Positions 3,278 to 49,400 of a stretch of 64,000 bases of DNA are shown here, piece after piece (within the stretch, counting starts at the first letter, position 1; each line of letters opens with the position of its first letter). The notes under the pieces were generated by a model that searched no databases, had not been told where the DNA came from, and worked only from the letters and a program-made list of their open reading frames with translations. The position numbers and the translations under genes are program-made. The DNA is from Paragordius varius (lineage: Eukaryota > Animalia > Nematomorpha): NCBI GenBank assembly GCA_964247055.1, contig OZ176054.1, positions 11,532,001 through 11,596,000 on the forward strand. Direction: 5' to 3'.

Positions 3278-3316
<39 letters not shown>

Positions 3317-15394: not shown

Positions 15395-18300
15395 ATGGTA
15401 TCAAAGGAATTTTTTTCGCTCCTTCTATGGACCATAAGTAACTCTAATAATATATTATATTTTAGGTCTGAGTTATGGTTTATCGTTTGATATTTGTGCT
15501 AAGGGCCCCGATGCTTGGTGTAAAAATTTAACGACAATGAATAAATGCGGAGCCATAAATTTTTGTCTTAGTATGTATAAAAATCAAAAATCTGTGGATC
15601 TGGTATATATTTGTTAGCTAATATTTTATAGCCTCAAGATGATAAATGTCAATTTTGTGTTTATATGGTTCAAGATTTAGTTAGTCAGGAAGATACGTCT
15701 CTAGTATTTTTCTGTTTTTTATTTTTTAGGATAAAATCGGTCAAACTCTAGATGAATCATGTGCTATGTTAGATGAACCATATAAATCTTCCGTATAAAA
15801 TTTAATTAATTTTTTAGTGTTTGCAAACCGAAAACAATAAAGAAACCATTCAACTCATGATCCGGAACACTATTGTAATATTTTATTTTAGTAATGGGGA
15901 AAACTTTTTTAAAAAATATTTAGGTAAATTATAATTATAAAATATATTACATATTCGATAAAACTTTATAGTGTTAAGTAACCTTTTAAAATTTTAAATT
16001 TACCTCTAGATAAAATTTGATTCAAGCAGTCAATTTTACTAGCAATAATTTAATAACTGATTTTAAATTTTTGGCAATATAATATAAAAATTATTAATTT
16101 TTGAGATGCATTTTACAATATTTATTTTTTTCCTAATGTACCTAAAAAGCGTAGATTGCATCATTAATTATCATTGGTAAAAATGATTTTATTAAATTAA
16201 AATTGTTATAGGGGTTAAATACATGCCAAAAAATTACTAGTGTGTTTAGAATTTATTTTATTTTAACAATCTCTTTTTTGCGTGGTGTTCATTAGTCACC
16301 GTTTTGGATATGTAATGCCATGAGTTTATGCGATATAAAACGGGAACAATCAATCCCCACTTTACGAGATGGTATACAACACATTAACTTGTTGGAGAAT
16401 TTGCAGGATCCTTCACAAAAAACTGTATAATTTTTTTACTTTTCTGTTCTTATCGTTTGAATTTTATTTGAAATTTTTTATATCATATAAATTTATAATT
16501 ATTTAATATATTTAACAGTACAATTTTTTTCTTATCGTTAAAAATTCTTCACTTTGAAACCTAAAAACTTCCAATGATAAACACGTATAATTATATAATG
16601 AAAATTTGAGGTTAGATATACTTGATTAAATTTAAATGTTTTAAAAAAATAAGCAATTTTCGGAAACAAATTCAAGATGATTTTTAATATGCTTTCACTT
16701 TAAAACATTTTTTTGTTAATATTGTGCATTAAAAGGTTAGAACAACTCTATTTTGTAATTTGATTTAGTGTATCTCCAAATTTTTTATAGATAAATAAAA
16801 TTGAAATTAGTATGTGGTCGTCAACTACCTCATTAAACAAATCACTATTTTAGAAATCATATAAAATATTTTTATGGATATTTTATAATATATTTTTTAA
16901 TAATTTAATTATCAAATTTTTTTCTACACATTTTAGCTTAATTCTATGGTTGATAAATTGAACCATATCCTAATCGGGGCTGGTATGCATGATGAAAATG
17001 GCCATACAAATTCCTCCGAAAATGATTTAAAAGGAGATCCCGAAACTATTAAGCCTTACATTGACGAAAATCATAACCCATGGGTTAAATTAATCCCTGC
17101 AGAAAATATTAACGCGAATGTTGAAAATAAAAATAATGTTATTAACATAGATGAAGATGATATTTTGTCTGATATTTCACCTCAGTTCGTTTATTCGATC
17201 ATGAAAGAACCCTTGAAACTCATGGTGGCAGAATTTAGGACGCAAGCTTTACAAGCTAATGTTAAGGTAATTTGTTTAAAAAAATTTTTTAGTTTTAGAC
17301 TTATTTTCATGTAAAATTAGACTTATTAAGGCCCCTTATTAAGGCCCCTTATTTAAGGTTAATTCATTGCAAAGTAGAATTAGTAGTTTACGGGCTAATT
17401 TTTTATTGACTTTTACTACGATTAAACATTAAATATTTTTGATTGTAATTTGAATCTAATAAGATTTTATAAACACAATTATTAGATGAAAACTTTAAAA
17501 ATTACTTTTCTATTTCCTTAAATACTTTTATTTTAAGTTTATTCTGTGCCTTTTTTTATCATATTTACTTGTTTGAAACATGATATTTGTCTGTTTAGTT
17601 GAAAAAGATGTGGTAATCTTTATATGTTTTTTGTTGATATATTATTTACAATTTAAATTCATCCTAAAAATAAATTATGTATTTTTGAACTTATATAACT
17701 CATTTTGAATATGAAATATATCTTTATGGCATAGATTTTTATTTTTTAGTATTAGTTTAATTTAAAACAAAGTTTTTATTTTTAAAAATATATATAGCTA
17801 ATTTTTGATCTTAAAAAACACATAATATATTTTAGGGTGAATTCGAATTGTTTAAGGGAGTGATCTGTAAATGGTAAATTTATTTGAGAAATAATTATTA
17901 AATTAATCTATTATTTTATTATATAATAATATTTTAATAATTCCTACAAGGATGAAAACTTGTGTGATATGTGCGTTAAAGGGACCACCGGACTCGAATT
18001 GCTTTTGGAAAAGAAGGAATTCCAGGAAGATTTGATTGCTTACTTGCGAAATTTTTGTAACATTATAGAGAGTAGTGTTAAAAAAACTATGGTATTTTTT
18101 GATTTTATTAAACTATATTGTATCAGATTATATATAATTAATGTTGAATAAAAGTTCGGTTTATTAGTTATATATATATATTATAATTAGTCAAAAACTT
18201 TTTATCTGTTAGATTAGAATAAAATTATGAGATTTTTGGAATTTTAATTCATTTTAATACATTATAATTAATGGTTGGTTATAAACTCTAATTTTCAGAA

Positions 18301-21300
18301 ATTTTAAATAATGGTTAGTTACATTTTAAATTTCGCAGTAATTGCTATTAATATAACTTTTAAACACACTATTATAATCAGCTCATTATGTTTATGTATT
18401 GTTACATACATTTTAAATTCCCATTATAGTATGCATTTTAATATGGTTGCTTATTTCAAACTATATTAGGGTGCAATTTGCAACACTGGTGTGTATGGAA
18501 AAAAAGTAAGCAAAAATTGTTTATTTAGCATTTTTTTGTTTTTTCCATATACTACTGTTGCAAATTGCCCTACTATAGTGTGAATTAAGCAACTATTAAA
18601 ATGCATATTCTATTATATATTTTATGTACATTTATGGCAATGATGACTGTATTAAGCATCGGGACTGGTTATTTATTTTATTAAAAAAACCAAACCCAAT
18701 ATACCACAATTATTACATAAAATTACTCTTAATTTCTTAAAATAAGTCCCAATTTACATATCAAGTTTTACCTTTAAATTTACCCCTAACTGTTAGTTTT
18801 TTTACATGCATTCTAAATAAATTATGCCACCATAAATATAAATGAGTATTTTAAATTCACGCCCTTAATTTTTACAAAACAACTTATTTTAAAATAACGT
18901 TTTTGTAAAAAATATTTAAAGCGTTTTTTACAAAAAATATTTATTATATTTATCCTACAGTGTAAAGAAGCCTTGAAGGAAGAGGTCCCCGAGTTTTTAG
19001 CTTTCCTTAGTAAAGAGCTCAGGGCATTCAATGTGTGTATTGATGCCAAATTTTGTACACCTAAACTGTTACAATTAGTTCTGACCAAGGTAATTTATAT
19101 TATAATAATTCTGAGTTTTTAACGTTTTTTTTTACTTATTTTCCATTTACGGCTAAATTAAGTACAGTATAAAGAAAATGAAGATTCATTTAATGTCTAA
19201 CGCCTAAATTAAAGTTACAAGGCTAATATCTAAAGTCGAAATTATTTTTGAAGTAAAAGATTGTTGTCTTTTTTTAAAAGTGATATATCCTTTTTAGGTC
19301 TCAACTTTAAATTAGTCTATTTCACATAAGCATAAGGGTTTCTTTAAAATTAAAAATTAATAAAATAGATTAGCTTTCAATAATAAAAATGACATTCTTT
19401 TATTATTTTAGTTAATATTATATATAAATTTTTTGGATATAAATATAATTTTTATACGTTATCCATATTCAGCCCTTGAACTCTTCAAGCTTATGCGAAG
19501 ATTGCAAAAAATTGGTTGAGCAGATACGTAAATTTATCAATAAAACTCAAGTATATTAAATTTGTCTATGGTTGTATTCATATGTATACTTTTTCCATAA
19601 ATATTATTTTAAATTAAGAATTTTAAAATATATATTTATTTCCATATAAGTATCAAATAATGTTGAAAGCTTACGGGGATTAAATATATTGAGATGTTAT
19701 GTTATTTAGCCATATTAAATACAGAAAAATTTAGAAATTTATCTTTATTTTCATAAGATTATTGATTTTTAATTTTATAATTTAAAGTTAAAAGAATTGC
19801 GCATATTTGTTGTGTTATTATAGTAGATTAACCATTGTATAATTTAAAAATGGTTTTTATATACCGAGATTTTTCCGAAGAAAACTATCTCTTTTATATA
19901 AAGTTTTTTGCGCCTTAATTTTTAAATAAAAATAAAGGTTAAATAAATTTTTTATTTGAAATAATTTTATATTATTAAATAGCCAAATGTAATGGATGGT
20001 GTGCGACACGTATGTCAAGCTATGCCAAAACGCCTTGAAGAAAAGTGTTCATCTTTAACACGAAATTATATCCCAGCCATATATGAATACATTAATTTGC
20101 TTATAGTAAGTCTATATTTTGCCTTAACTAGTTCAATTTTTTTCTAAAATTGGTTTTAGATTAGCACCAAGTATACGTTAAAAAATGATAGTTTTTCTTT
20201 TGATTATATTTAAATATTTATATTAATATATTTTTTATCATTAATTAGGTGTTAGAATTTTTTGTGAAATCATTTTTTTAAAAAGATTATACTTTACAAA
20301 AGCTGGATTATTCTTAAAGTTTGCATAGATATATTTCTTAATTAGTTATTAATTTTATTAAATTCCGGATATAATTAGCAACTAATCATAATTTTTTTGT
20401 AGAATTGAAAATTTTGTTATCTAGAAATAAATAATTTGAAGTAATGTTGTTTTATAAATATCTCATTATTAGTGAATGCAAAAATTATAAAATCTAAGTA
20501 TTTTTTACAAATAATATTTGATCTTTGTTTTTACCTATACAACCCATGTAATTACAAATGGGAATCAATTTAAAAAGTATATAACCGTCCTAAAACAATT
20601 TTTTTTAAATTTTATTTAACTTTTTAAATGCCCTAACATAGGATCCTGTACAAATGTGCGAAGCTTTTGGCATATGTATGAGCAATGCTGCCACACATAA
20701 TTCAGTTAATCAAATGAAAATGAAAGATGCCCTTGAAATTATAAGCCGAAATCTATTGACCTTTGGTGGACCACATTTTGGTGCACAAACGCCTAAGAAA
20801 CAAATAAGTAAGGAGGATGATGGTAAAAATTCAGATATGTTGGCTTTACCAGATTTGAATTCGCTTTCGAGATATGCCATACTACCGATTCAAAACGATG
20901 AAAATATTTCTCAAAATGGTGGTACTAAATATTTTATATTAGAATATGAATTAAAAAATATATTGCTAAGTAGATTGATTTTTCATAAATATTGTTGCCT
21001 CGGAGCATGCATAGTCAGGAAAAAAATTAGATTGGCAAGTAGGGTGGATTGAAATTTTCTTTATTGCAGCTAATAATATTTCTATTTACTAGTACTAGTT
21101 ATGCATTTTATTTATAATGCACAAATGCTAACTACTTTCTTTGATTGTTTTTTTAAAAAATGTTCATATTTTATCATCACCAAAATTGAAATATACCTTT
21201 TTTATTACTAGAAATAATTTATAAGTTTGTCATTAATATGCGAAACTTTCTTGGCAAAAATATATTAAATTATAGCTTGATATTATAAAAGCATTCGGAA

Positions 21301-24300
21301 TATGTTTGAAATATATTAGTTTTGATTAATTTCGTCCATAAATTTTTTTTTATATAAAAAAGATTAAAAAAGACATTTTTTTAAAAAAAGCAGGAAAAAT
21401 ACGGTAACTTATAAATTGTTTATATTTTACCATACATTTCTGTAATTATTTTTTGTAATTTATGATAACATTTTTCTAGATGATGAAAAAGATACGAATG
21501 ATGTACCCAACCCTGAAAAATGTCGAATTTGTACCACGATAGTTGATAAACTTATTGAGGGTATTGGCGATGACAAAACTATGGTATTTTTAACACAATT
21601 TTTTAATACGTTAAATAGCGGATTTTTTAAAATTAATCTTTTTTGAAAACTTGATTATAAAGGTGAGAAGTTAAAATTATCTAGCATTTAAATATAACAT
21701 CAATTAACTATATTCCATACCTTATTTCCTATACTCACTCACATTGGCTAAAAAATAGAAAAAAATTAAGCATTTTATTTTATATATGTCCCCTTTATTA
21801 CAATAGCAATTAAATATCAAAGCCTAGTAGCCTTAATAATTTTTTACTGGTATTTTTGCATATATAAATAAAACCATATTTTTTATATTATTTATTTATA
21901 TTTGTTTATCCAGTTTTTGTTGTAATAACTAAAAAAATATTGATTGGAATTATTTAAGTTCAGCAATAAATAAATGAATATATATTTTGAACATGATTTT
22001 TTGATTATTACTTGTAATCTTTGTCGAATGTAAATATTAAACAATAATATAAAATACCCATAAACTAGCTGTGGAAAGTTGCAGTGATTTTAATTTTAAA
22101 TAAACTTAACAGTTAAGAAGACCTTATCTTAATGCATGATCATCTAATTAATTTATTAGAGCCATTTTTACAAAAAAACTCACTATTAAAAGGTCAAGAG
22201 ACATCTATATTTATCTATAAAGAACATTTCGCTATTTGAATTAATTTCTGTGTTTTAAGGATAATATCCATCAAGTTATGGCCAAAGTATGTGATGGCCC
22301 CCTCGGACCCGACGTTGATAAAAAAATTTGTACCAATTTTATTACCCTTTACGGGGATTTGATATCTTTGTTACTGCAAAAAAATCATACATCAGGCACC
22401 CTTATATGTAAAAGTTTTGATTTTTGTCAAATCCCAAACCCACCGACCCATAAAACACTTTTGTTTGGAGCTCCATCTGAATCTAGACGATTTGGTTTAC
22501 GTTCCTCGCCTCACAGTTCATTGCAAAACATGAATAATATAGGTAGGTATTATTGAGAATTTTTTGATTTGGTTTAAAGTGGAATTTTATATGGGCCAAT
22601 AAAAATGATTAAATTATATTGAAATATATTTTTTTAGTTTTTTAAAATTGCATATGCTTGTGAGTTTTTATTTAAAAACATATAAAGTAAAACCTACTAT
22701 TTTAATTTTTAAAGAATTATTTATATTTTGATTCTTGATTATAGTTATTAAACTATTTATCTTTCAATCTTCACTTATGTAATTGTCTATATAATTTTAT
22801 TCTTTACCCTGTTTTGTTATATGTATAGTTGCACTCAATGCTTTACCGGGCGGTAGTGAAACGAATACAGTTAAATGTACGCTTTGCCTAACTATTGCGG
22901 AACAAATGATAAAATTGTTGGGAAATAATAGGACTCGGGTATATATTTATATGGCTTTTCTACTTTTTTTGCATTATTTTTGAATATATTTGTAAAAAAA
23001 TATAAATAAATCCATAAAACTACATGGCCGCTTTTAGTATAAATGTATAAAAAAATATTTGTTAGTCACAACATGTAATTTATTGTCCAAAATGATATAT
23101 TAATTTTAATTTTTTCCGCCTTATAACACACACATTAAATAAATTTTTGTTTCTTAAGTTACGTTAATGAAATAAGACCTAATTTTATTCTAAATTTTAA
23201 TATTATTTTTCAATCTAGATTTTGAAAATATTTGGGAGTGTTTTTTATAGCAAAAAATCTCATTGTCCTTTACTGTTTTTACGTTTTGTCTTTTTATAAA
23301 ATATTAATATTTCCGATTTTTACGTTTAAATCATTATTTTATATGAAGGAGAACATTGTTCATGCGCTGGATATGGTTTGTGACTTAGTACCTGGACATT
23401 ATCGTAAAGATTGTAAACGCTTCATAGATGATTATGGACAAACTTGTATGATTTTGTTTGATAACAATGTAAATGCCACCCAAGTGTGTCAAGCCTTTGA
23501 TTTTTGTCAACTGATTGATGATGGAACAAAAAATTATGCGGGTAATTCACTAAGAAATGAATTAGCCAGTCCAAGGGCGAAAAAGATACCAAATGCATTG
23601 GATATTGATATGCCTGTCATACTAGTTAATGGAGATGTAAATGGTAATGCTTTTTATTTTGGTAATTTATAGGTTACTTTTTAAAAAAAATTCTCATTTA
23701 TTTTCCCAAAGTTAATTTATGTTAAGATCTGGCTCGTTAGTTAAATTCTTTAATTTTATTAGTGTTAAATACGTAAAGAATATATTAATGTGGAATTTAC
23801 CGTTTCAAATTGAGAAGAGATTTGATCAAAAATTTTATTGTCACTAAATGCTAATAAACATTCAATTGAAAATATAATTTGTAAAATTATATTTTTGTAC
23901 TTACTTACACGTTACAAAAATGGGTCCGACCGATCATCAAATTTAACCAATGAAAAAAGAAACCCAAAACCAATTCATTATATCATACCATTTAGTCATT
24001 TTTATATAGCCGTCAAACATTTTTTCTTGTTTAATACAGTATTTGTGAACAATTAACTTAACCGCTATCCCTTAATTAACTAAGTGTTTAGGCTACATAT
24101 ATATTCCGTATACTAACATTTACATCCAACGAACAATGCATATTTTATTAAAAAACGTTAATTAAACACAATCGGCGATGATAAATTTAAATAATAAAAC
24201 AATAAAGCGTGAATATCTCGGCCAAAATTTGCGCATATCAGGATTTTTTAAACCGCAAAATAAGATACACAGTATGCATTTAAATGATTGTTATTTCACT

Positions 24301-25846
24301 CTATATAGTAGGGGGCAGTTTAACAACACAACAATAGTGTATGGAAAAAAATGGTGAATAAACAATTATTTCCTTTCTTTTTTCCATACACTACTGTGTT
24401 GCGAATTGCCCCCTATTATAGTGTATATAAGCACCCAATAAAATGCATACTGTACTTTATTAACCAGACAAACTGGTTATAATGTGGTATAGTTATAATC
24501 CTGACATTAATTTCAATGATTATTCCATTAATTTTTTCACACCCAATAATTTGGCCATATATTTACAATCTTTAGTGTGTTTTTTTAAAACTATTAGCAA
24601 TTTATATTTATCGTCGATCAAATGTAGTACATACAATGCTATAATTAATTTTTAACGCTTTCAAAATTATTTCGTTTTTTATAGTGAATGGTGATAAATA
24701 TTGTTCAGAATGTCGACTACTCGCTGCTTGGCTCGCCAAAAAGATTGGAGAAAATGCAACGGAACAACAATTGTTGGATATGGGACACAAATTTTGTCAT
24801 GAATTACCTGGGCACTTCAAAGTTGAGGTATTTTCCAAAAAAATTTGTTTTAGTACACCATTTACATTTAAAATTTACTTTTGGACAATTTAAATTCACC
24901 CTCGAACAATTCAAATTCACCCTATCCAACTAATATAACTCATTCATTATTAATATGAAATAATAGTTTATTATTTTTTCAGTATTATTTTAATTTAAAA
25001 CAAATTTTTATTTTTGGAAAATATACAAAATATAGGTAATTTTTGATTTTAAAAAACATATATTTTATTTGAGGGGGAATTTGAATTGTTAAAGGGTTAT
25101 ATATAATGGTAAAATGAGAAAAATACGTTTTATCAGTTATTATTAAATAAAAAATATGCTATTTTGATTTTAGCAATTTTGAATAAAAGATTTTGTTAAT
25201 TCTAATTTTTAATGGATAATTTATTATTTAATATGTTATATGTTTTGGGTAGTGTGAAAAGTATTTGGATGATTATGGGAGACAATTTTTACAATTGGTG
25301 AGCGAATATATGGATCCTGATGTAGTTTGCCAGGTATATTTTAAGCAGTATTCAAAAAAAAATTATTAAATTGCAGTGTAAAGTTTTCATTAAACGGTTT
25401 TTTACATAAGTAAAATTTATAATGAGGAGTCTAAAAAGTAAAGTTTTAATTTTTTTATCATTGAACTTAAAAGTTAACTCTGATATTTTATAATAGAAGC
25501 ATTTTTAATCTTTATAAAATCTATAATTACGGTTGAACAATGAGTAGATATATAAAAGAGTTACACACCCTTAATTCTAAATTTCATAATCATTATTTTA
25601 AATACAGATATAAAACATTACGGATTAGTAAATGCGGCCTGTTTCCATAAAAATATGGTTTTTTTATCTTTAAGATTAAAATTTTAATAGTCTAACCTTA
25701 ATATTCAATTTTTGCTCTTTTTACATTTAAAAATATATATTGTTTTATTTTATGATGATATACAGCAAGTTGGATTGTGTAAAGCTCGTCGCGTAGATAT
25801 CCTCACTTCAGCAAGAGATATTGAGAGAAAACATCAAATTGTTTAA
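15395..25846 (+). CDS. PSAP: Prosaposin-like precursor: signal peptide, one SapA and six SapB domains
   Basis: 19 exons: 15395-15437, 15466-15602, 15632-15703, 15730-15792, 15818-15874, 16296-16424, 16937-17266, 17951-18091, 18961-19089, 19473-19550, 19983-20105, 20642-20921, 21480-21583, 22260-22542, 22829-22938, 23349-23643, 24685-24827, 25253-25333, 25766-25846. SapA is CAKGPDAWCKN..KCGAINFC. Six CxxC...C...C...C..C sets follow (CQFC, CDMC, CEDC, CRIC, CTLC, CSEC). Stop TAA 25844-25846. Confidence 0.88.
17690..17872. mobile_element. MITE family A, partial copy (right end only)
   Basis: Shares the internal AT-rich core and the AGGGTGAATTCGAATTGTT end with the copies at 24888, 46190 and 51605. 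Confidence 0.55.
18426..18613. mobile_element. Palindromic MITE family B, copy 1 (prosaposin intron)
   Basis: Arms AGTATGCATTTTAA..GCAATTTGCAAC..GTATGGAAAA and TTTTCCATA..GTTGCAAATTGC..TTAAAATGCATA are inverted. A second copy is at 24270-24452. Confidence 0.7.
24270..24452. mobile_element. Palindromic MITE family B, copy 2
   Basis: CAGTATGCATTT...AAATGCATACTG ends and the same internal GTGTATGGAAAA/TTTTCCATACAC inverted pair as copy 1. Confidence 0.7.
24888..25107. mobile_element. MITE family A copy
   Basis: Left end AAATTCACCCTCGAACAATTCAAATTCACCCT; right end GGGGAATTTGAATTGTTAAAGGG is its inverse. Confidence 0.65.
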
Positions 25847-25908
25847 AACAAAACATATAAATTGATTATAGAATTTTATTTATTTATAATTAACCATTTT
25901 TTTCCCTT

Positions 25909-25963
<55 letters not shown>

Positions 25964-28065: not shown

Positions 28066-28211
28066 TTCAGTTTTTTTAAAAAATGCTTAATTATATCCAA
28101 TATATTGATGAAAGTTTAAACTATCCATTATAAATGAATCTTAAACAGCACTCCATAATCTTTGAAGTAGTCTTAACCATAACCCACAAAATTATTTTAA
28201 AAGTATAAAAC

Positions 28212-28367
28212 AGAGTTGGTCGTCCAGCAATAACATGGGACAAAAACATTACCCAAGACCTACAGGCCAAAAACATAAAAGCCGGGGACTGGTTAAACAA
28301 AAAATCCTACAATGCAATGATCAAACACCTAAACCCCGTCACGACGGGATGCCAAGGGACCTCTTGA
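28212..28367 (+). mobile_element. Short 3' end of a non-LTR retrotransposon ORF (RTE-like)
   Basis: RVGRPAITWDKNITQDL..NPVTTG* resembles the RGRP..W.D.V..D C-terminal tail of RTE-type RTs. It is GC-richer than its flanks. Confidence 0.45.
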
Positions 28368-28442
28368 CAACAGATATCTATCTATCTAGAAAAAAATAAA
28401 TATATATTTTATAATAATTAAAGAGACAAATATATTACACGA

Positions 28443-28824
28443 CTATAATGAATATAATTTAAGTTGTTCATTTAAATCAGTTTCCGAAAATTTGCCAAAT
28501 TTATCCTCATTCTCATGCATGAGCTTCATAATTGCCTTTAATTGTTCGCGTTCAATTCTGTTTAATAAAATTTCATATTTAACCTTTTCTCTTCTTGCAA
28601 ATCGTCCTGTTTTTTAAGATTTTCATAAGCATCCACATATTTTCGGTTTAAAATTTTATTAGAATCCCATGTATAAATGGATTCATGAGGGAGATCAATA
28701 AAAGACGATTTCTACCATTATAATAAAGAGAAACTTTTTTTGGAGGTGCTAAATACTTGTTGACACAGAGATAACATAAGATTCCCAGTAAGATAGTGGT
28801 CGCAAATAATAAAAATTGATCCAT
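28443..28824 (-). CDS. MXRA7: MXRA7-like small single-pass membrane protein (110 aa)
   Basis: Exons 28735-28824, 28584-28711 and 28443-28557. N-terminal anchor MDQFLLFATTILLGILCYLCV. The C-terminus DDLQEEKRIEREQLKAIMKLMHENEDKFGKFSETDLNEQLKLYSL* matches the MXRA7 motif EEEQRVQKEQLAAIFKLMKDNKETFGEMSDGDVQEQLRLYDM as recalled. Not in the ORF track because of 23- and 26-nt introns. Confidence 0.85.
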
Positions 28825-28964
28825 TTTTTCAAATCACATAGAAATGCGATAATTTTTATATCATCGATTCGATCAACCCATCATTAAAAAGATCTTTTCA
28901 GCTGTAGAATATTGGTGAATTGGTGGAAAGTTAAAACAAACACGCCTCCAAATACAATATAATA
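28825..28964. promoter_or_regulatory. Putative bidirectional promoter and 5' UTRs between MXRA7-like and PDAP1
   Basis: Only 140 nt separate two divergently oriented start codons (28824 minus, 28965 plus). Confidence 0.6.
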
Positions 28965-31001
28965 ATGTCAAGACGAGGCCGAGGTTTTAAAATTAATTTT
29001 ACATTTAGCTCCAAAATATAATCACAAGGGGAAAGCTAGACATTTTACGAACCCTGAAGAAATTCAAAGACAAATGAACGAATCAACCAATGCATTTAGA
29101 CGAGTATATTAATCTTTTTATTGTAACAATTAGAAAAAAGAAACAACCGAAAGCAGCTCAGAGGAAGAGGATGAAAATTCAAGCGAAAATGTTTCTGAAA
29201 GCGAAAGCGATGTATTTGTTTAAATTATATTTTTTTCAGAATGGAAATAAGGGAGTTACCAATCTAATCGAAGTTGAGAATCCGAATCGAGTCAAAAATA
29301 CATCCAAAAGCATACATGCGGTTAGTAATGTTCCCGAAAAAGTTCAAGTATCACGGAAAGAGAGGTAAAATATTTTTTGGCTAATAAGTTTTTATCGTTT
29401 TTTACTTTGTACTTATTTATTAATTAAAATTTATTTGACGTAATTCATTTAAGCGATTTTATATTTTATCCTTAATGATATCTGTGATATTTAGAAAAAA
29501 TATGTAAAAAAAAATTGTATGCAACTTTTAGCCAGTCACATTAAAATTTATTTTCATACATCAATTATTTATTAATACTTTTTCATAGTTATCAAATTTA
29601 TCTATATCGATTGAAATAATGATTTAAATCCTAAACAATAAAATTTTTTTGCGTATTTAGTCAATAAAACCTAATTTTCCATATCAAATGAAATGTTTAT
29701 ATTATAAGGGAAGCGATAGAAAAAGAACGAGCTGCTCAACGTTACGAACAATTACACGCTCAAGGCAAAACCGAAGAAGCCAGAAAAGATTTAGAAAGAT
29801 TGGCCCTTATACGAAAGCAGAGAGAGGAAGCCGCCGCCAAACGGAATGCTGAAAAACAGGGTTATTGCATATTTCTTTTGTGACATACATGTGGTTGGTT
29901 TATCACAAAGTTTTGAGAATATACCGTTTTTTGATTGACTTTAAGGGTTAAAATTGTCATTTTTAGTAGAAGAAAACGTATATTTTTGAACTTTATTATC
30001 ATATTCTTCTTATCGCTCTTGACTGGTTATAACGGAGGATTAACGTCAAATGGAAAAGAATTTTTTTTGTCTTGGCAACACAACCATATTTTTTTCTCCG
30101 TACATTTTTAACTTTTATGATAATTAATGACTTTTGTTTAGTTATTTTAACAATCTAAAATTATAATACGGATGTCAAAATAAAAGATTAAAATGTTAAA
30201 GCCAAAAATATCTACCCTTTTTTATCTCCGATTCATTTAATAGGTTTTTGTTAGGGTCCTATCTTTTTATTGAAAGTCAAAATAATGGCGCAACCTTGTT
30301 TGAAATAGCCGATGATCACTTTTTATGTCATTATTTTAATAAAATTTTATAAATATACAGAACTTTAAACGTTACCTGAAAAAATAATAATATGTTCAAT
30401 AGAACTGTATTTTTTACTTCCTTTTTATCAGTTTTGTTCGGTATGCGAAACTTTCATATAAAGTACAACTTTATGGTTCCTTATTTTTATATAGCTCAAT
30501 GATTAATATTTCCAACGGAATCAATTAAGCAAATAAATAAGAATGCACATATATTAAACATTAAAACTTTGGGTTAATATGTGTTTTTATATCCAAAGCC
30601 AAATTTTTTGGTCTTTATTTTTTAAGTAACCCATATTATTGAGATTGTATTAGAAATGTCACCATCAATTTACATTGTTATTATATAAGTTACTAGATAC
30701 TTGATCGATATTTATATCTCCGTGTTTTTCCAGGTTAACCACAAATTAATTTATTACATTCAGACTTTTTATTGTAAACATTTAGTGTTTTATATCATAT
30801 TTGATGAGATCCTATTTTTTGATTTTTTTAAAATTAGCTCTGTTGTTGATTAAAAGGTTCGCCAAAAATCAATAAAACCGATTTAGTAAAATAAATCGAT
30901 TAGAATTATAAACTTTATATATACATTCTTTTATATTTTCACTATTGATCATAGGTCCAGTTAAGCCAAACCCCAGTGATGCTTTCAAGAAAAAGACTTA
31001 A
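28965..31001 (+). CDS. PDAP1: 28-kDa heat- and acid-stable phosphoprotein (PDGFA-associated protein 1)
   Basis: Exons 28965-28983, 29009-29103, 29134-29211, 29240-29364, 29709-29860 and a probable last exon 30955-31001. They give [14 protein letters not shown], an acidic Ser-rich tract, [14 protein letters not shown] and [47 protein letters not shown]. The last exon is uncertain. Confidence 0.93.
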
Positions 31002-31739
31002 TCGAAAAAATGTGAATGGAATCCGAATATAATATATCACACAAGATATTTGCTCAGATCATGACCAAATGTTAACTAATTTTACCAAATTCATATCTCG
31101 ATACACACATATCACATATTTTTCATGTTGCAATCTCTGATATATAAAAAACCTTTTTTAGGGTTAGTTAATTTCATTGTACATACATTTTTATATGTTA
31201 TTGTGCTTTTAAAGATTGAATATCCAAAAATAAATAAGATGTGATCAACCTTTCTTATCGTATTTATGCTCGCCACTTATTAATGTACGGAATTTCATAT
31301 TGCCAAAAACGAACAGGACTTTTATCCAAATCTTTATATAATTTTTTTTGAATACATAAGGTGTTTCACTACATCCCCATTACCATTAAAAAATTCTTAT
31401 TTTCTTTTTGACAAAATTACTTTTATTTAAAAAAATATTTTCGACATTAATAATAATCATTAGTTACTAATTACAACTTTCTAGAATTACATACATTAAA
31501 ATTTAATTTTAAAAAGTAAAATTTTCAAAATCAAATTTTTAATATAGAGCTAATGTGTTTGAAAATATTAAATTGTTTACTAAGCAAGAAGTAAAAGCTT
31601 AAATATATTACTCTTTAAAACTATTTTATCCTATGCTTTTTATCTTATGCTATAATTTAAGTTTTTATTTCGAAATGATCAGGTAACAAAAGAATGTATT
31701 TACCCTTTTTTAACAAATACCATTATACCTTTGAGCTAT

Positions 31740-31960
31740 GCATGATTCATTTTGTCTTTTGTGGAATGGCTAGCCATTGTACCAGTAATGAGATGGTCTT
31801 ATCATCGCATATTGGCAACACTTTACTTTTAATGTTTCTTTTTTCTCCGTTAAATTGGTCTACTTCCATCATTGATGCTTATAGGGTGTAAATCAAAAAA
31901 TTTATTATTCAATTGCTCTGGAGTACCTGTGATATGGCCGAAGTATCTGAGTTCATTTTT
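31740..31960 (-). mobile_element. Possible remnant of a non-LTR retrotransposon C-terminus
   Basis: Minus strand reads ELRYFGHI, a motif typical of LINE RT tails. The rest is degraded. Confidence 0.3.
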
Positions 31961-32084: not shown

Positions 32085-32405
32085 GCTACAGTCGAGGTTC
32101 ACTTTTTGAAATATTGTAAAAAAAACTTCTCCATAGGTTGCGTGGCTTAATGTTGAGTTCTGTTAAGGTTGCATTGGTTTCTTGTAGAATATTGTCCATC
32201 CACATTATCCTTCTTCGGCCCCTTTTACGAATACCACTAACCTTTCCCAAGATCAAGGCTTTTCCCAGGAGTTAGATCTCACAATTTGGATAAAGTAGGA
32301 TAATTTGGTGCGGATGTACATTCCTAGCAATGACATATCGTGAATTATTTTATTTAAAATTGCTTTGTTAGTTATTTTATCCGTCCATTTTATTTGCAAG
32401 TACTC
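32085..32405 (-). mobile_element. Second 3' fragment of the RTE-clade LINE seen at 5518-5900
   Basis: LQIKWTDKITNKAIL..MSLLG..TKLSYF..VRSNSWEK/ALILGKVSGIRKRGRRRIMWMDNIL..NLWRSFFYNISKSEPRL* aligns by eye with the 5518 copy. Confidence 0.8.
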
Positions 32406-32659
32406 CTGAGATAAACGGAGGATACGGCCGCAAATAATAACAAAATTAGGGATCCCATGATGTCAGCTTAAAAATGAAATTCCACTACAAATGCAATCAT
32501 TTGCCCAGCTTTTCTCTACGGGTTTAGGTTGGACTTTAAAAAAATCCGATTTACGGATAATAAACTCCTTTGAACTCTGGTGGAGAAAAAACTTGCAAAG
32601 CTAACGGTTATTAATTGTTATTAAAATAATCGCATTTTTTTGTATAAAAAATAGGAAAT

Positions 32660-39700: not shown

Positions 39701-40494
39701 GTATATAAAAGTGTAAATTTTAGCGGTCTATAAAAAAAGAAAATCTCAGATTTGCATAAATTAACGCTAACGGTAACTTTTTCACAATACTTTTTTTTCT
39801 AGCTCATTGTTTTATATGGACTTTTATGTTTTATAGGAATAGAAATTTATTTTTTAAAGATTTTTTATATGTGATTTTAACCAGAGTGAAATTATCTTTA
39901 TTCCATTTTTCGACGCCCGTACTTCCATAAACTGATTGAGGATTTTTTAATAAAAAAACGTTTTGGTCGCATTCGATCTTTTTAATATAATACTAGTTTT
40001 CAACTCATCAATTCAATAATCTGGTAAAAGGTACTTTTTTAGTCATCAATATTTAATTTTTCTTTAAGATGAAAAAATTCCATTCTCATAATTAAACCTT
40101 ACTGTTATCAGGCCAGGTTAAACAATTTATTTGTCAATATAATAATCGAATTTATTTGATATCTATTGACTTTGAATGCTTTAAACTGCCATAGATAAAA
40201 TCTAAAATGTCATAAGTTGTTCAAAAAAAAGTAAATTTAAAAAATATATCTCCAGTCAAGCAGGAGCCAAGACTAAAAAGTAACCCTTAAAACTGGAAAT
40301 CATTACACATCTCTCAGATCTTTTCTCCTTTGTAAATTGAAATCAAATAGGTTTTTTGGGCAGAATTTATAAATATATGATTAAACGTGACATTACATAA
40401 TTAGAATACTACAACAACGTAGTTTAATTGTTAGCCAGGAGGAGAAAAAAAATCAAAAATCCTTAGACCAGTAAAATTCGGATAGTATCATGAA

Positions 40495-43400
40495 ATGAAA
40501 TTTTGTTGTCCAAAACTTCCACATTATGTAATCGAAATCAAAACAAAAGTCCAATTAGCCAGCTTACGGATCGTGAAAAAATCATATCCTTTTTATGTCT
40601 ATAACTATCAAACAAATTATAATTTAAATTTATATAAGTTTGAATTTGTAAAATATTTTATTTAAATAATATGTCACGCGAAAAAATCGTTTAACTTTTG
40701 TGATTTATTACCATATAATTTTTAAACTTTTTTTTTATCCAAAAATTTAACTGGTGGTTTTTTACCAGTTTAAAGAATTAATCATGCGTTGAATACTTTC
40801 TTTTGTGTGACTGTAATTAATTGGAAATTGGTTGCTAAAACTAATTCTACATCAAATAATTACTTATTTAATTTTAATTATTTTTTACCACTGTTTAAGT
40901 CTAACTTTGAGATTTTTTTCAGTTCTTGTACTAAATTACTTGACGATTTTCCCCAATAACACGCGAAACATTTTAAAAAAATTACCTATAATTTTAAAAG
41001 GATATTCTATCTTGCACTTGTATATATTTACACTTTAACACTTCGATTCAATGTATTTAAATACCAGACTAAATTTGAATTAGGATTTATAAAAAAAATA
41101 CTGAAGGAAACGGTCCCAATTTAAATTTATGCTTCTAACCCTATAAAAATTATACAAACATGCCAAAATATCTAATTTTATTTTGTTTTAAAAAAATTTT
41201 CCATGTCAAACAGACGCCATTTTTATTTTACAAAATTTTCGCAAAATATCGTCTTCATCTAATTTTAAGGGTAAAATTAAAGCTAATTTTTTATTTAAAT
41301 TACATCTAACATTGATAAAAATAGAAAAAGCGGTTTATTTTGTATTATCTTTCAATTTTACCATTGCACACATGTATGGCTAAATTTTTACCTTTCGATT
41401 TTAGCTTAAAATTAGTAAAGTTTAGTATTTTTGAATAAAATTATTTATATATTTGGGTATATTAATGTTATATAAGTGAAAAATTTTGCATTGGTTTCGA
41501 TTCCTTCCATATTTTTCTTGAAATTTAATTTTAAACAGGCCTGGGGTATTTAACTACCCCTTGAATCAAAGGACTAAAATGAATGTGTTGCCAAGTGTTA
41601 AATCAGAGTGGTTCCCACCTTTTTTTGTTCATGCACCACCAAATTGAAAATATTCTTGCGAGCCCACCTCTATCCAAGATAAAATTGTATATAATATAAT
41701 ATTATAAATCCGAATTAATATGATCCTTATATCTGCATTTTTTGAACTATTTTTCCATATCGGTGACAGATCTAGATAACTCGCATCAATAATCCTTTAT
41801 AGTTTTATTTTTTAATCCAATTTTTTCGCGCCCCCCTTTTGGGAACTATTCTTTTAAATATTACCGTTTCTTGGGCTATAGGCAGTCAGAGAAAAATGTT
41901 TAATAAAGGATTTGATTTCATTTCATCAAGAATGAAGGATTCACAACTGATGATTACAATAAAAATATTTAACCTTAAGTATAATAAAAGTTATTTTAAA
42001 TGGCTTACTCCAATATTATACAACATAAAAATACGGGCGTAAGAGTTGAAAAAGTAAATGCTATGCGTTTAGACGTATATGCCCTTTATATGACAAATAG
42101 TTTTTTAAGAATGGCTTTCAGGCTTTTAATAATAAAGATTTCCGGCATATTTATCATATATATTAATACTACCTTTTTATTTTGGGAAAAAACCTTAACT
42201 CAATAACCCATCACTAAATAATTTACATGGTTCGAGAAATTAAGCATTACAATAATCGTAATCAATTGCATAACTTTGGGTATGTACCAACCGTGTAAAG
42301 ATGTTCAATGCCTTTCCACCCGATGCAAACTTTTAACTTTTTGTGATCATGGTATATTTGCCTTTTTCACCCTTGAAATGATAATAAAAATGATTGCTTA
42401 CGGCGTGTTTGGAAAACAGGGCTATTTATCGGAAAGTTGGAACCGTCTCGATTTTTTCATCGTATTAGCCGGGTACACAATTGTTATATAAATTTTATTT
42501 ACAGTTTGAATAAACGATATACATTACTAGTTTTTCCTTATATATTGCTAGATAGCATATACAGTAAAGAGCTTAATTATTGGTGACTAACAAGAAAAAG
42601 TGAGAAAAATATAACTTTTAGCCATTTTTTTACTCTATGTGCTATCTGGCAATAATTAATAAAAAATCTAGCAATATAACTCATGTTTTTAATTATTCTT
42701 AACGATATATTTACCAATATTTTTTGGAAAAATGGGTAAATCCATGCAATATTTTTTTTACATCAGAACTATAGAATATATTTCGGATTCGGAAAGCATA
42801 AATTTATCAGCCATTCGGACAGTTCGAGTTCTCCGTCCTCTCCGGGCTATCAATCGTATTCCCAGTAAGACTATATAATAAAATGAGTTATGTTAGTTTT
42901 TTCTTCGTTAAACAAATGTATAAATTTAAATATTATTGACAATTATATATAGGTATGAGAATATTAGTTACCCTGCTCTTAGACACTTTGCCTATGCTGG
43001 GAAATGTGATGTTTTTATGTTTTTTCGTTTTCTTCATATTTGGAATCGTGGGCGTACAGCTTTGGGCTGGAATTTTGCGGAATCGATGTTTTCTAAACCT
43101 CCCGCACAACATTTCTCAAAGCAGGTAAAGGATGAATTATATTTTAAATTGATTGCAAGGAGATAATATTTTTTTGAGGAACAAGTAAACATCAAGGGAG
43201 TTATTTAGGCATGGGTGGTTAGTTAATTTTTTTCTAACACTAATTAAAATTATAAATGTGGCAAAACTACCAATTCGCCGAAGATCATCGGCGCTATTTT
43301 TGTATCATATATTTTTAAAATTGGAAGTATTTTTGGGGGGCGGGTTTCATATTTGGGATTTATAATTTTACCATTATCACATTTAATGATTTCGTTGATA

Positions 43401-46400
43401 TAGTTGGAAGTTAAACAGCTGTGTATAAATTCTATAGGCAAAATTTGTTTTTGCAAGCATCCTATACAATATACCTATCATAGTGTTTTTAATAATCAAT
43501 GTTAAATGAAAAATAACTTGACCAATGTCATTGACCATAATGTAAACGAGGGTAGAATAGGGCGTTTTTTGAATTTATATGCTTTGCCTTGGCAGAATAA
43601 ATTTAACGATGAAAAATATGACATTAAAGTAATGAGCACCATTTTTATAAATGAACCAATATATAATCAGCGCCTGTTTGTGAGTTTTAGCCCTACCATA
43701 TGTAATATCGTCGTTTTCCTTATATACAAGTCTATGACTTCCTTAATTAATATTGGCTAAAAGTAGTGTATTAATATCCTCAATAAGTTTTTGTTTTTTT
43801 TTGAAATGAACCGCCAGGGTATACCCAAAAAGAAGTATAGGCCATTACTATTATATAATGGTTATTATCTTTAGTCTAGCGCATTTGAGTAGCCCCGATA
43901 AAAGTCATAACCGATAAAACGACCATGGCGCACTTTTTTGGAAAACAAAGGCTTTTAAATATAGTCAGATAATATTTTATTGTAGAAGTCTATATTCGAT
44001 ATACCACTGGTTCTAGTGCATTGATTGCGTTAATAGCTATTTTTTGAAAAGGCATGAGTACATTATTTAACTATTGGGATTAGCGGTATTCATCCAACAG
44101 ATTTAAAGTCGATCCTAAAAATTAAAATTTCTTTAAATCATGGCTTGGCATACCCACATTTGATTTTAAATATTATTAGCCACTATAATGTCTATGTCGC
44201 GATTGTGATTACTGCGCTTAGAGGCAAGAGTGAAAATGTTACAGTAAGCTAAATTAAAATAGCAGGCTTCCAATTAATCGCTTATGTCATAATTTATTTT
44301 TTGGATAGAAAATTTATAATTTTATAAAAGATTCTAAATTTTTAATAATAATTCAAAAAATTTGACGGAAGTCAAATTAAGAAATATATTTTCGCTACAT
44401 TCTCTATCATCGTTTAAAATCTGAGGATAAGTTTTATTTTTATCGTATTTGCAAGGCGTCCTCAATTGTCACAATTTTACGAGATGGAAGGGGGAGAAGG
44501 CGAATTTATTTGCAGTTTACCTGGTGGTCATGGTATGAAATATTGCAAAGATGTCCCAACACTAAGGTTTAAATTTTTTATAAATATAACAACTGTTCTT
44601 TCATAGGTTATAAAAAGGAACATAGTTCATTTTACGCACATTTTTAATCATAGAATACGGAATCGGGAATGTAATCTTTCAGCGTTTTCAAATATCAACT
44701 CTTTACCTACTTCTTCCAATACAAGCAACAATACATTGTTTTTTAATCAAACTATCTCGCCTGGCACGTGTATTAATTGGAATCAATATTACAATGTATG
44801 CAAGGCAAGTGCATTTAATCCCTATGGAGGTGCTTTATCTTTTGACCATATTGGATTGGCTTGGATAGCAATTTTTCTGGTAATTAAAATTTCTTGATTA
44901 TAATGTAACAGTAATTAAATCTGACAGTTTTCTCCTTTTTGAATCCAAATTAAAGATCTTACCTCTGAATATTGAACAACAATCTTTCCAAAATTAAATA
45001 TTTATTGAAATTACTTAGGTCATTAGTTTGGAGGGTTGGACCGACATCATGTATTACATACAAGATGCTCATTCATTTTGGGATTGGATATACTTTGTAA
45101 TGCTCATTATCCTTGGCTCCTTTTTTATGGTTAATTTGTGTTTAGTAGTGATTGCTACACAATTTTCTGAGACCAAGAGGCGTGAACTTGCTAAAATGCG
45201 GGTCGAACGCCGTGAAATGAGACATTCTGTCAGTTCCTTAACGATGGCTAGCGCTGGGGAGCCTAAGAGTTGTTATGTTGAAATACTAAAGTACATTGCA
45301 CATTTATATCGTAAAACTAAACGGGAGTTGATTAAATGGGCCAAAACTCTACAAACTTGTATTATTGTTCAACGCGAAAGACATAGAAAACGTAAACTTC
45401 GCCGGTGTTTAAAGAAATCGCCTACGGATGCGAGTACTATAACAACGCCCCTAGATGGGTGCAATTATCAATTGGCCCAATTTGATGAACCGCAAATTCT
45501 TTTAACAGAATCCACACCACTAGCCACAAATAAAAATGGCCAAAATCTGAAAATGGCATCCAAGTAATATAATTTTGTACTACCTTTATACTTTTTGCAC
45601 ATAACAAGGTATGAAGTCCAAAACCCTGCATTTGGTTTAAATATCCATACTAATTCCCAACTCCCCATTGTGGATTTTCTTAAAGTATCTCATATTTTAT
45701 TTAAAAAATTGGCTATTGAATTGTTTCTATGTTAATTGTCCCTTAATAAAGGTTGATGAGCCCGCTCCAGTTGCAAGCCCCGAGCCATCTGACATTGATG
45801 GCAAATTGTCGCCACGATATTCATTCCCACATATCGTAATACTATTTTAATAATTATATTTATTTTTATGCTATTAGGATTATGGAAGAGATAATAAAAA
45901 TATTTCTACAAACAATGAAAAATATGAAAAAGAATATTTAAATTCATCGCTAATACCTCGTCAAAATTATGAAGTAAGTCAATCTTATATATATATATTA
46001 TAAACAGTAATAATTTCTTAGGAAGTATGATGGTTTGTTTAAAAGCTGATGTTTGGGTAAATACGGTCTTAGTAGTAATGTAAATTGGCTCGACAGTTAA
46101 ACAAATAACAATTAAAGCGACAAAATAGATGCATAAAATGATTGTAGCCCGTAAGGCGCCCAAAGAAAGGCCATTATTTTATGATGTATCATTTACGATT
46201 CAAATTCACCCTTGGAACGATTCAAATTCATCCTAAAATAAATTAGCAATTTTCGGGCTTATATATCTCATCATTTAAATTAAATATATTCTTATGGCAT
46301 AATTTATTATTTATTCAGTATTATATTAATTTGAAGCAAAATTTTATTTTTTAAAAATATTAAAAATATAACTAATTTTTAATCTTAAAAAACCAATTTA

Positions 46401-49400
46401 TATTAGCGTGAATTTGAATTGTTCGAGGGTAATTCGGACTTTAAATGATATAATATAGCTAATAATTGCTATGTCTAGTCTATTTTAAAATTTTTTATTG
46501 GATGCACCTTGGACTCTTTTTTACAAAAAGGGATCTATCAAAAAATCAATCAAAATATATTTTATGCTGTATAATTTAAATATATTTTATGTCAAGACTT
46601 TAATATTCTAGCAATCAACACCATTATCATAAAAGCATAAGACTAAAAACACACACTTTTAACGGGTTTATTTCATATAGTAACTAAAATCAGTAGTTTA
46701 TTTAATATGTTAAAATAATTATCGCATCGTCTTGACTTTTACAATTATATTGAGAACTTAGGATTTATTTAATGCAAACATTTTTGAAGGGTAATTTATA
46801 AATATTTACAAATAATTTTTGAACCATTATGGTGTTATTGAAAATCAATCATAATGTAAAAAACTGTGATTTTTGTTTGAGTAATTATAATGCTAATTCC
46901 TTTAACCCTCAAAAAGACATAAAAACCATTTTCACCAGTAGTTCCAAGATAATTAAAACTTATATTTAAAAAATATATCCATTTTTTGTGTTAATATAGT
47001 CGAAATCCATTACAAAACACAATAAGGAAAGGAAAAAAACAGTTGATAAACCAAAATTCCTTAAGTTGTGTATATGGTCCACAAAAATCCGCACCGCCAT
47101 TCATAAATTGGTGGAGTCTCAATATTTTCAAAGAACAATTTTAGTCGCTATCCTTATCAATACACTAAGCATGGGCATCGAGTATCACAACCAAGTTAAA
47201 ATATTAATAATAACAAATTTTTACAAAAAATAAATGCGGATTATTAAAAAATTTTTCGATTTTAGCCAGACACTTTGACAACCGTGCTGGAATATACAAA
47301 TATAATGTTCACTCTCTTGTTTGCTGGGGAAATGTGCCTTAAAATACTGGCCTATGGTTTATTGGATTACATCAAGGATGGTTTTAACGTATTCGATGCC
47401 CTTATTGTCATTATTAGGTATTTTTAGTCCCATGAAATTATTAATTCGACATTTTATATTTTTTCACAAAATGTTCTTATTTATTATATAAAGTGTTGCT
47501 GAACTCTTTCAAGCAAATAAAAGCAGTGGTTTATCTGTCCTGCGAACCTTCAGACTTCTAAGGATTTTAAAGTTGATTCGATTTATGCCAGCTCTGAAGA
47601 GACAACTTATAGTCATGATTCGTATAATGGACAATGTAGCCACATTTTTCATGCTCCTCATATTGTTCATCTTTATTTTTAGGTATTATCAGATTTTCTT
47701 TTAAAATTTAAAGACTTTTTTTAACATATAAATTAAATTTTGGTATATTTAGTATATTGGGCATGAATTTATTTGGCTGCAAATTTTGCGAACAATTTGA
47801 GGACGGTCGGCAGGAGTGTGATCGTAAAAATTTTGATAGTCTACTGTGGTCTATAGTTACTGTTTTCCAAGTTTTAACATATTTTTAATTCATAACTTTT
47901 ATTGATTATTTTATTTATCTTTCTAAAACGATAAAAACCCTTTTATCAATAGATACTAACTCAAGAAGATTGGAATGTTGTGCTATTTAATGGAATGAAT
48001 AAAACATCCGCGTGGGCTTCCTTATATTTCATAGCATTAATGACATTTGGAAATTATGTTCTGTTCAATCTTTTGGTTGCTATTTTGGTGGAAGGCTTTC
48101 AGGGGGTAAGATTGATTAATACATTCAATCAGTATATAAAAACAAATTTATATCACTTTTTATTTCTTAAAAATTGTCGCATCTTTCATCTGTTATATAT
48201 ATTTTTTGATTAGACTTAAAAAATATTTTTTTACGCATTCAAAACCGACATAACCATTACTAAAAAACGGAATAACCCATTAAAAACTGTTTCTATAACA
48301 GTTAATGGCTCCTTCCTAAAAAATAATGAGAGATTGAGTAATTTAATCCATCTCAAAATAATTCTTTGTGGTAAATAATATATTTAAAAAATCACGATTG
48401 CATAATTAATATTATCAAATGTTTATGTATTGCCGATTCAAAATTAAATGTAAATAAGCTTGCTCAAGGCTCTCCCATATTTTCATCTCACTTTTTAATT
48501 TATAAGATTTTTGAATTTTAAGCCGCAAAATTCGTGGCTTTTAATTTTTCCATGTCCAACTTTAAGCCATACGAACCATTTAAGACGGCATTCCTCTAAA
48601 TGTCTGGTTCAAGGCTCATCACATGGTCTTTGGTATTACTCAAATACTAGAAAATATTATTTAAATATAAAACAAATTTTAGGATGATCAAAGCAGTTGT
48701 TCAGGCGATGATGCGCTAAAGAAAAAAGGTATTGTTTTCTTTATATTATAATTTTTAGATTTACAATATCTAGATTTGGCTGAAACTCATTCACCCAAAG
48801 GTAATGAATTGTTTTTTAAATACCTGGTAAATATCTACTTTAAAATTGGCCATTTTTATAAATGCGGGGTTTACTGCCTTATTTTATTTCCTTTACTATA
48901 TGTTACAGGTATAGTGCCTTATATTTGTATTTTATTTATAATTTAGACTTACATATATTAAAAATTAATCTAAATTTTACAAAAAATAAACTATTATAAT
49001 AGTCAGCTGTAGCACTACAATTTGTTTTTTGCAATTATTTTACTTATACGGCGCTCCCAATTGAATAAAGGCATATAATAAATAGGCAAAAAAACAAGCA
49101 AATCTAATCAGCCAGATGCTCCAATTATCATCCACACAGAGGCAACACCCCTAGGAAGTCCAAAATCATTTAAAAAAGATTATAATAAAAGTGCAGAAGA
49201 TGCATTTAAAAACGAAAGTGATCAAAGTGGTTCTGAAGGTCTTGGTGATGATATTAGTTTACCCTTTTCCCATATATCATCAATAGATTTTATGAGAGAT
49301 CAATTAACTGATAGGCTAACTTTGTTATCTGATACGTCAAAACCCAATCTTAAAGTAACTTCTAATTATTATCCAAGATATGTGTAGGGAACTAAACATA

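Follow-up and report, generated by a model that had tools for sequence, protein, structure and literature searches.

Can an animal that keeps ordinary and kilobase-sized introns also splice out introns of fewer than 31 nucleotides (nt)? This question is raised by a 64,000-nt stretch of the genome of the hairworm Paragordius varius (Nematomorpha; GenBank assembly GCA_964247055.1, contig OZ176054.1, positions 11,532,001 to 11,596,000 of the forward strand), hereafter called the window, in which a first-pass annotation had claimed ten GT-AG segments of 23-30 nt as introns. These segments lie in genes for a prosaposin (PSAP), an MXRA7-like protein, PDAP1 and a T-type voltage-gated calcium channel (about 42246-56566, named Cav3 in that annotation). 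Nine of the ten are upheld here: the segments in PSAP, MXRA7 and PDAP1, around which the reading frame is open only once they are removed, are very likely genuine U2-type GT-AG spliceosomal introns that shrank to 22-30 nt, as judged from genomic sequence. The tenth, at 48729-48758 in the channel gene, competes with an equally framed 357-nt intron and is kept as a candidate. All counts given for the window refer to this single stretch of 64 kilobases (kb), and a genome-wide mode of intron length is beyond the reach of one window.

All ten segments could be located at the coordinates listed below, and each of them begins with GT and ends with AG. The 5′ trinucleotide is GTA in seven and GTT in three cases, while the 3′ end is TAG in eight and CAG in two; the nine upheld micro-introns measure 23, 25, 25, 26, 26, 28, 28, 29 and 30 nt. 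Their content of guanine and cytosine (GC) is about 15% as compared to 34% in the flanking exons, with a window average of 27%. Lengths are not a multiple of three in 8 of the 10 segments, and both 30-nt segments carry in-frame stops. Reconstruction of the frames gives a stop within a few codons of a retained segment in every case of the nine. Motifs of the U12 type (a 5′ end of the form /RTATCCTT or the branch site TCCTTAAC) occur in none of the ten, while U2-type GT-AG features are found in the form of splice-site dinucleotides in 10/10 and restoration of the frame in 9/10. T-rich stretches and TAAT- or CTAAT-like motifs are present 6-16 nt before the AG, but they are expected by chance at 15% GC, and a set of ten is too small to tell them from chance.

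The introns of PDAP1 can be compared one by one with those of a cricket (Gryllus longicercus). Its introns in the window are the following:

28984-29008, plus strand: PDAP1 micro-intron 1, 25 nt, phase 1; same codon and phase as cricket intron 1 (615 nt), four codons before NHKGK
29104-29133, plus strand: PDAP1 micro-intron 2, 30 nt, phase 0; in-frame stops if kept; phase shared with cricket intron 2 (1747 nt), whose position differs by no more than one codon
29212-29239, plus strand: PDAP1 micro-intron 3, 28 nt, phase 0; three codons before KGV, exactly like cricket intron 3 (78 nt)
29365-29708, plus strand: PDAP1 intron 4, 344 nt, phase 2; shares its alignment column and its phase with cricket intron 4
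29861-30954, plus strand: PDAP1 intron 5, 1094 nt, phase 1; spliced in the RNA-like sequencing run X5

Spliced from the ATG at 28965, the gene yields a PP28-type protein of 171 residues, which aligns over its full length to insect PP28/PDAP1 proteins; every partial combination of introns leads to stops. Modelling was carried out with our own spliced protein-to-genome aligner, which permits introns down to 18 nt and was given the cricket protein as query. Unaided, the aligner selects exactly the three micro-introns (score 158). If only introns of at least 35 or 45 nt are permitted instead, scores of 117 and 108 result, the ATG is lost and the acidic tract is replaced by an out-of-frame basic stretch. 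Longer alternative introns thus do not rebuild PDAP1, because the models forced to use them lose both the start and the acidic tract.

The cricket and mayfly PDAP1 loci were modelled by the same aligner, and the annotated proteins were reproduced exactly. The cricket gene contains five introns in phases 1, 0, 0, 2, 1 with lengths of 615, 1747, 78, 100 and 1336 nt, and the window gene contains five introns in phases 1, 0, 0, 2, 1 with lengths of 25, 30, 28, 344 and 1094 nt. Introns 1 and 3 lie at the same codon in both; intron 2 is offset within one codon in an indel-prone region. As positions and phases match those of cricket introns, the PDAP1 micro-introns appear to be old introns that shrank. 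We regard this positional homology as the strongest new evidence in favour of micro-introns. As a detail of the third micro-intron, an in-frame alternative donor (GTTTAAAT) is present at 29218, 6 nt inside it; splicing from there would shorten the intron to 22 nt and lengthen the protein by two residues.

A second line of positional evidence comes from within the window itself, as prosaposin is made of repeats that can be compared with each other. The first part of the gene is organised as follows:

15395-15437, plus strand: PSAP exon 1; ATG at 15395 and a signal-peptide-like start, the frame continuing only once the next segment is removed
15438-15465, plus strand: PSAP micro-intron 1, 28 nt, GTAACT..TTTTAG, GC 0.14; stop if kept, and no ATG is present within the SapA exon
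15466-15602, plus strand: PSAP exon 2, SapA domain (Pfam SapA, E 6e-9, residues 24-50)
15603-15631, plus strand: PSAP micro-intron 2, 29 nt, GC 0.17; joins the SapA frame to the SapB frame, with stops otherwise
15704-15729, plus strand: PSAP micro-intron 3, 26 nt, phase 0; in saposin repeat 1, 10 codons ahead of its Cys3
15793-15817, plus strand: PSAP micro-intron 4, 25 nt, phase 0, GC 0.08; immediately before Cys4, restoring the C-x10-C spacing
15875-16295, plus strand: PSAP intron 5, 421 nt, of ordinary size; joins ..RNTI to SPFWIC.., completing a six-cysteine saposin B domain

Removal of all four micro-introns leaves one open frame from the ATG at 15395, and keeping any one of them introduces stops. 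The 29-nt segment at 15603-15631, which had been called no more than possible, is thus needed for the open frame. With exon 16296-16425 added, a six-cysteine saposin B domain is obtained. In a sequence search of the PDB with the spliced product, all 13 of 13 matches were saposins or surfactant protein B, the best one being saposin D (E 0.004), which aligns end to end and ungapped at the junctions of micro-introns 3 and 4. The earlier statement that the 25-nt intron restores the C-x10-C spacing is in line with this ungapped alignment. Pfam gave no detection of the saposin B part of the spliced product.

Micro-intron 3 shares position and phase with introns of 432, 676 and 410 nt (19551-19982, 21584-22259 and 22939-23348) in repeats 3, 4 and 5, and micro-intron 4 has the position of an 869-nt intron (18092-18960) in repeat 2. 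Introns of at most 30 nt at conserved positions are hence found at PDAP1 introns 1-3 and PSAP introns 3-4. Since introns of the cricket PDAP1 gene (615, 1747 and 78 nt) and of sister saposin repeats (410-869 nt) share these positions, ancestral introns very probably shrank in place, the micro-introns being old introns and not new insertions. Beyond the part listed above, prosaposin continues at 17960-23669, and the gene has at least five saposin B repeats overall. Repeats 1, 3, 4 and 5 have the intron 10 codons before Cys3 in common, and repeats 1 and 2 the one before Cys4. A further saposin-like half domain lies at 24684-24893.

In the third gene, encoding the MXRA7-like protein on the opposite strand, a protein domain crosses one of the junctions:

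28443-28824, minus strand: MXRA7-like gene, 110 residues, three exons (28735-28824, 28584-28711 and 28443-28557), a complete open reading frame (ORF) once spliced
28712-28734, minus strand: MXRA7 micro-intron 1, 23 nt, GTTTCT..GGTAG; the exon 2 frame lacks a Met and meets two stops within this segment
28558-28583, minus strand: MXRA7 micro-intron 2, 26 nt; the Pfam match crosses the junction at residue 73/74, and stops follow if it is unspliced

Removing both micro-introns turns a stump of 58 residues into an ORF of 110 residues, running from 28824 to a TAG at 28443, and residues 65-109 of the spliced product match Pfam MXRA7_helical with an E value of 1.3e-17. As exon 2 lacks a Met in its frame and two stops lie shortly upstream, exon 1 and the 23-nt intron are needed. 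The gene is arranged head to head with PDAP1, with 140 nt (28825-28964) between the two start codons, and RNA-like contigs from two haplotypes cover 28768-28888. Its 3′ end adjoins a very high-copy repeat at 28300-28393, for which the summed word depth in DNA runs is 79,000-159,000 versus about 300-750 in single-copy neighbours.

As an alternative, the frame breaks could be assembly indels or the marks of decaying pseudogenes, with GT..AG ends that are coincidental in AT-rich DNA. Pairs of GT and AG 22-30 nt apart are indeed common at 27% GC, amounting to thousands per window by an estimate from base composition, and a dinucleotide control was made because such pairs are frequent. For each of the nine junctions, all deletions of 18-35 nt that keep the flanking exons in one stop-free frame were collected and their boundary dinucleotides tallied; the set of equal composition consists of the 64 pairs of dinucleotides that each have one strong and one weak base. 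Among these 64, GT..AG alone bridges 9/9 junctions, while the next best pair reaches 6/9, and the chances at the single junctions multiply to 6e-6. Pairs very rich in AT, e.g., AT..TA, bridge 9/9 as well, as composition predicts, which is a point for coincidence; against it stand the result within the equal-composition set, the sharp islands of 15% GC that the segments form within exons of 34% GC, and the agreement of positions with cricket introns and with introns of paralogous saposin repeats.

Sequencing reads bear directly on the same alternative. Runs were compared with 28300-31100, where X1 and X3 behave as DNA and X5, from the same sample as X3, as RNA; X10 is an RNA run from 2017. DNA contigs of two samples (X1 and X3) cover 28818-29395 without any difference and, gap-free but with six substitutions, 28859-29514. 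In the PDAP1 region, the frame breaks are therefore not assembly indels, as the DNA contigs of two samples lack gaps there. That such indels might account for the breaks had been raised in the first-pass annotation, and for PDAP1/MXRA7 no indel was seen in the DNA of either sample. In the second sample, PDAP1 micro-intron 1 contains two single-nucleotide polymorphisms (SNPs), and exons 1-4 contain a single synonymous change. Between samples, 9/11 differences in the PDAP1 coding sequence are synonymous, the remaining two being one residue change and one early stop. The predominance of synonymous changes, together with expression of PDAP1, speaks against a pseudogene, and we consider an origin of the nine segments from indels or gene decay extremely unlikely. 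The early stop itself deserves a separate remark: at position 30990 the second sample has A>T in both DNA and RNA, converting the third-last PDAP1 codon from AAA to TAA, so that this allele is three residues shorter.

Expression of PDAP1 is seen in run X5, whose depth is 770-990 on the last PDAP1 exons versus 0-5 inside the 1094-nt intron. One X5 contig joins 29859 to 30954 (GT..AG at cut +1) at a depth of 1008, i.e., the 1094-nt intron is spliced. No RNA contig or read crosses any of the ten micro-junctions, and it is for this reason that we infer the removal of the micro-introns. As another alternative, the segments could stay in the mRNA, in which case the proteins would be shorter, would start elsewhere, or the segments would be bypassed by the ribosome. 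The missing RNA junctions are compatible with such retention; on the other side, a retained segment brings in the early stops described above, cuts off the conserved PDAP1 segment, the MXRA7_helical domain and the saposin cysteine pattern, and leaves downstream exons that have no start codons. In addition, X5 contains 0.55 of the sampled words of 28400-29500, below the expectation of about 0.7-0.87 for unspliced and near that of about 0.5-0.6 for spliced transcripts. This word share fits the spliced form in a way that is suggestive and no more. Taken together, retention is judged to be very unlikely.

Besides the lack of RNA junctions, several observations weigh against splicing of all nine segments. 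Neither exons 2-5 of PDAP1 nor exons 2-3 of MXRA7 have any contig depth in X5. Here, short unitigs from a divergent allele are a plausible cause of the missing contigs, and it is likewise plausible that a gap of 25-30 nt dropped short X5 contigs below the 90% likeness threshold. The X5 word-share test is rough, as it is built on 102 sampled words, is affected by individual SNPs and used ends of untranslated regions that are not fixed. The read check covered 28300-31100, i.e., PDAP1 and MXRA7, with PSAP lying outside it, and frame logic is the sole support for the first two introns of PSAP and the first of MXRA7. Protein searches with spliced PDAP1 and MXRA7 returned no hairworm orthologue and no identical transcript-derived protein, and tblastn of PDAP1, MXRA7 and PSAP against two loci of the hairworm Gordionus gave no match. 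A caveat on clustering at 5′ ends is that the channel candidate, if real, would lie mid-gene and not at a 5′ end. Of the remaining runs, X10, which carries the same species label, gave no contig on 28300-31100. Runs X4, X6, X7 and X8, labelled as four other organisms, contain 0.72, 0.30, 0.22 and 0.12 of the words of 28400-29500; their sources could be close relatives, infected hosts or the repeat alone.

A further possibility is that the segments are excised from somatic DNA, like the internal eliminated sequences of ciliates, and not removed by splicing. A size of 23-30 nt resembles that of eliminated sequences in Paramecium, and ends of the AT..TA type are possible at 9/9 junctions. However, the DNA of X1 and X3 (tissue of origin not known) shows the unexcised form only, and the absence of any joint at the micro-introns in the DNA contigs of these two runs argues against removal at the DNA level. 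The GT..AG boundaries and the positions homologous to ordinary introns of other species likewise speak for splicing, and DNA excision is hardly credible as an explanation.

The tenth segment lies in the channel gene:

48729-48758, plus strand: candidate intron of 30 nt within the linker between domains II and III of the T-type channel, GT..AG, GC 0.13; in-frame stop if kept

The channel exon that ends domain II stops at 48105 in phase 0, and an island at 49118-49165 that is conserved in Gordionus (E 0.002) needs a phase-1 entry at 49086. This entry is supplied if the 30-nt segment is spliced out between exons 48683-48728 and 48759-48800; exon 48683-48728 alone, followed by a 357-nt intron at 48729-49085, is equally in frame. 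In the latter case, donor 48729 would pair with acceptor 49085, and the 42-nt exon in between (exon B) would be either no exon or an optional cassette. In favour of the 357-nt intron, the 46-nt upstream exon (exon A) alone ends in the phase 1 that the next conserved exon requires, and exon B, 42 nt long and hence a multiple of three, has no detectable similarity to the Gordionus linker. In fact, no usable Gordionus similarity was found in the II-III linker around the candidate apart from the island at 49118-49165. On the other hand, the frame of exon B (33% GC) is open, with TTTTTAG as acceptor in front of the exon and GTAATG as donor behind it, and the 30-nt segment resembles the other nine micro-introns. 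The 357-nt intron is accordingly given nearly, but not quite, an even chance, and we treat the 30-nt intron as a candidate for which the balance, as far as sequence can tell, is about even. The 5′ exons of the channel were not located by homology.

Do the nine micro-introns form a class of their own? In the conserved parts of the channel, introns of 48, 59, 59, 66, 68, 70, 71, 73, 76, 81, 82, 87 and 88 nt are present in addition to introns of 139-1331 nt; the shortest, a doubtful one, measures 42 nt. A SEC13 gene in the window has introns of 381, 2107, 610 and 771 nt. Overall, nine introns measure 22-30 nt and at most one, doubtful, 31-47 nt; about 13 fall within 48-88 nt, and about 17 within 139-2107 nt. 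Within the window, this nearly empty gap at 31-47 nt supports the proposal of the first-pass annotation that a separate size class of micro-introns exists beside one of about 42-90 nt and long introns. Its second proposal, that micro-introns cluster at the 5′ ends of genes, agrees with uninterrupted runs of 4, 3 and 2 beginning at intron 1 in three genes of this one window: the micro-introns are the first four introns of PSAP, the first three of PDAP1 and the first two of MXRA7, adjacent to each other, and later PSAP and PDAP1 introns measure 344-1094 nt.

The nearest relative with an annotated genome, likewise a nematomorph, shows part of this architecture. The SEC13 part in the window (215 residues, 677-4421) has its best match in SEC13 of Gordionus sp. 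m RMFG-2023 (52% identity, 207 bits versus 181 for the next), and the best match of the channel exon is a Gordionus protein, too. Intron positions in SEC13 are common to both species. Like the window genes, Gordionus SEC13 has small introns at its 5′ end (52, 40, 45 and 50 nt) and kb-sized ones further on (4367 and 8034 nt). In contrast to the window, however, the small introns of Gordionus are 40-60 nt long, with none below 40 nt at the two loci compared (SEC13 and channel).

A few other features of the window may be recorded here. SEC13 and the T-type channel are about 1 Mb apart on one Gordionus chromosome (OX940783.2, 13.13 and 14.18 Mb) versus 40 kb in the window, and a claudin-like gene follows the channel in both species, on the opposite strand in Gordionus. 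Transposon-like ORF fragments occur at 5503-5894 (plus strand), 32089-32462 (minus strand) and 1778-1996 (minus strand), two of which share a W-x-D-N-[IV]-L-x-E-T-N tail; one such fragment and other ORF debris lie inside the 2.1-kb SEC13 intron. Between SEC13 and prosaposin, an open frame of 366 codons (8548-9645, minus strand) has several hydrophobic stretches and no Pfam match, its longest ATG-started ORF being 361 residues (8545-9630). Rfam gave no match in the window.

What could have produced such introns? We consider it likely that a discrete class of 22-30-nt introns arose in the hairworm lineage through shrinkage of ancestral introns at the 5′ ends of genes, with ordinary and kb-sized introns kept in a large, repeat-rich genome. 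The spliceosome would remove the micro-introns by intron definition, presumably making use of a GTW 5′ end, a T-rich stretch and a YAG 3′ end. If this is true, it would represent a third independent origin of animal introns below 30 nt and the first one not tied to genome compaction, and an ecdysozoan spliceosome would accept as little as 23 nt between splice sites. Shrinkage would then seem to be driven by position in the gene, e.g., by intron definition near the promoter, and not by a general bias towards DNA loss. In this case, tiny introns would be separable from tiny genomes, and extreme sizes would be linked to the 5′-clustered architecture known from flatworms. In practical terms, gene finders that accept no intron shorter than 30-40 nt may cut such genes short or shift their frame and, if so, mis-modelled micro-intron genes could contribute to the apparent loss of genes described for Nematomorpha.

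Known systems with introns of this size differ from the window in instructive ways. The first-pass annotation had listed dicyemids and ciliates among them, but its list lacks myxozoans (PMC13644364) and flatworm microintrons (PMC6530080). In ciliates, introns measure about 25 nt in Paramecium and 15-16 nt in Stentor (PMC5014332, as cited in PMC13644364). They resemble the window introns in size range and in that retention is visible to translation; unlike here, all introns are tiny, and the organisms are unicellular with another genome organisation. Among animals, a 2026 survey of 51 genomes gives introns below 30 bp for myxobolids and Dicyema alone, and its main text makes no mention of nematomorphs (PMC13644364); introns go unmentioned in two nematomorph genome papers. 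Within the literature searched, animal introns below 30 nt are therefore published only for myxobolids and Dicyema. According to the same survey, Myxobolidae and Dicyema japonicum share with the window GT-AG introns of 22-30 nt, conserved positions flanked by conserved exons, reduced motifs (GTa ... AG) and a parasitic lineage, but their introns are tiny throughout (median 22-27 bp) and their genomes are compact (PMC13644364). In the window, in contrast, the tiny introns are a subset beside about 30 introns of 48-2107 nt in a repeat-rich ecdysozoan genome. The closest architectural parallel is provided by the microintrons of flatworms (Opisthorchis felineus, Schistosoma and tapeworms), where intron lengths peak at 37, 90 and 3000 bp, microintrons are clustered and 5′-biased, and the smallest intron allowed in gene finding has to be set lower (PMC6530080). 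The flatworm class peaks at about 37 nt as opposed to 23-30 nt here, and it belongs to Platyhelminthes and not to a nematomorph. What both have in common is a separate short peak, members adjacent to each other, a 5′ bias, and coexistence with classes of about 90 nt and of kb size.

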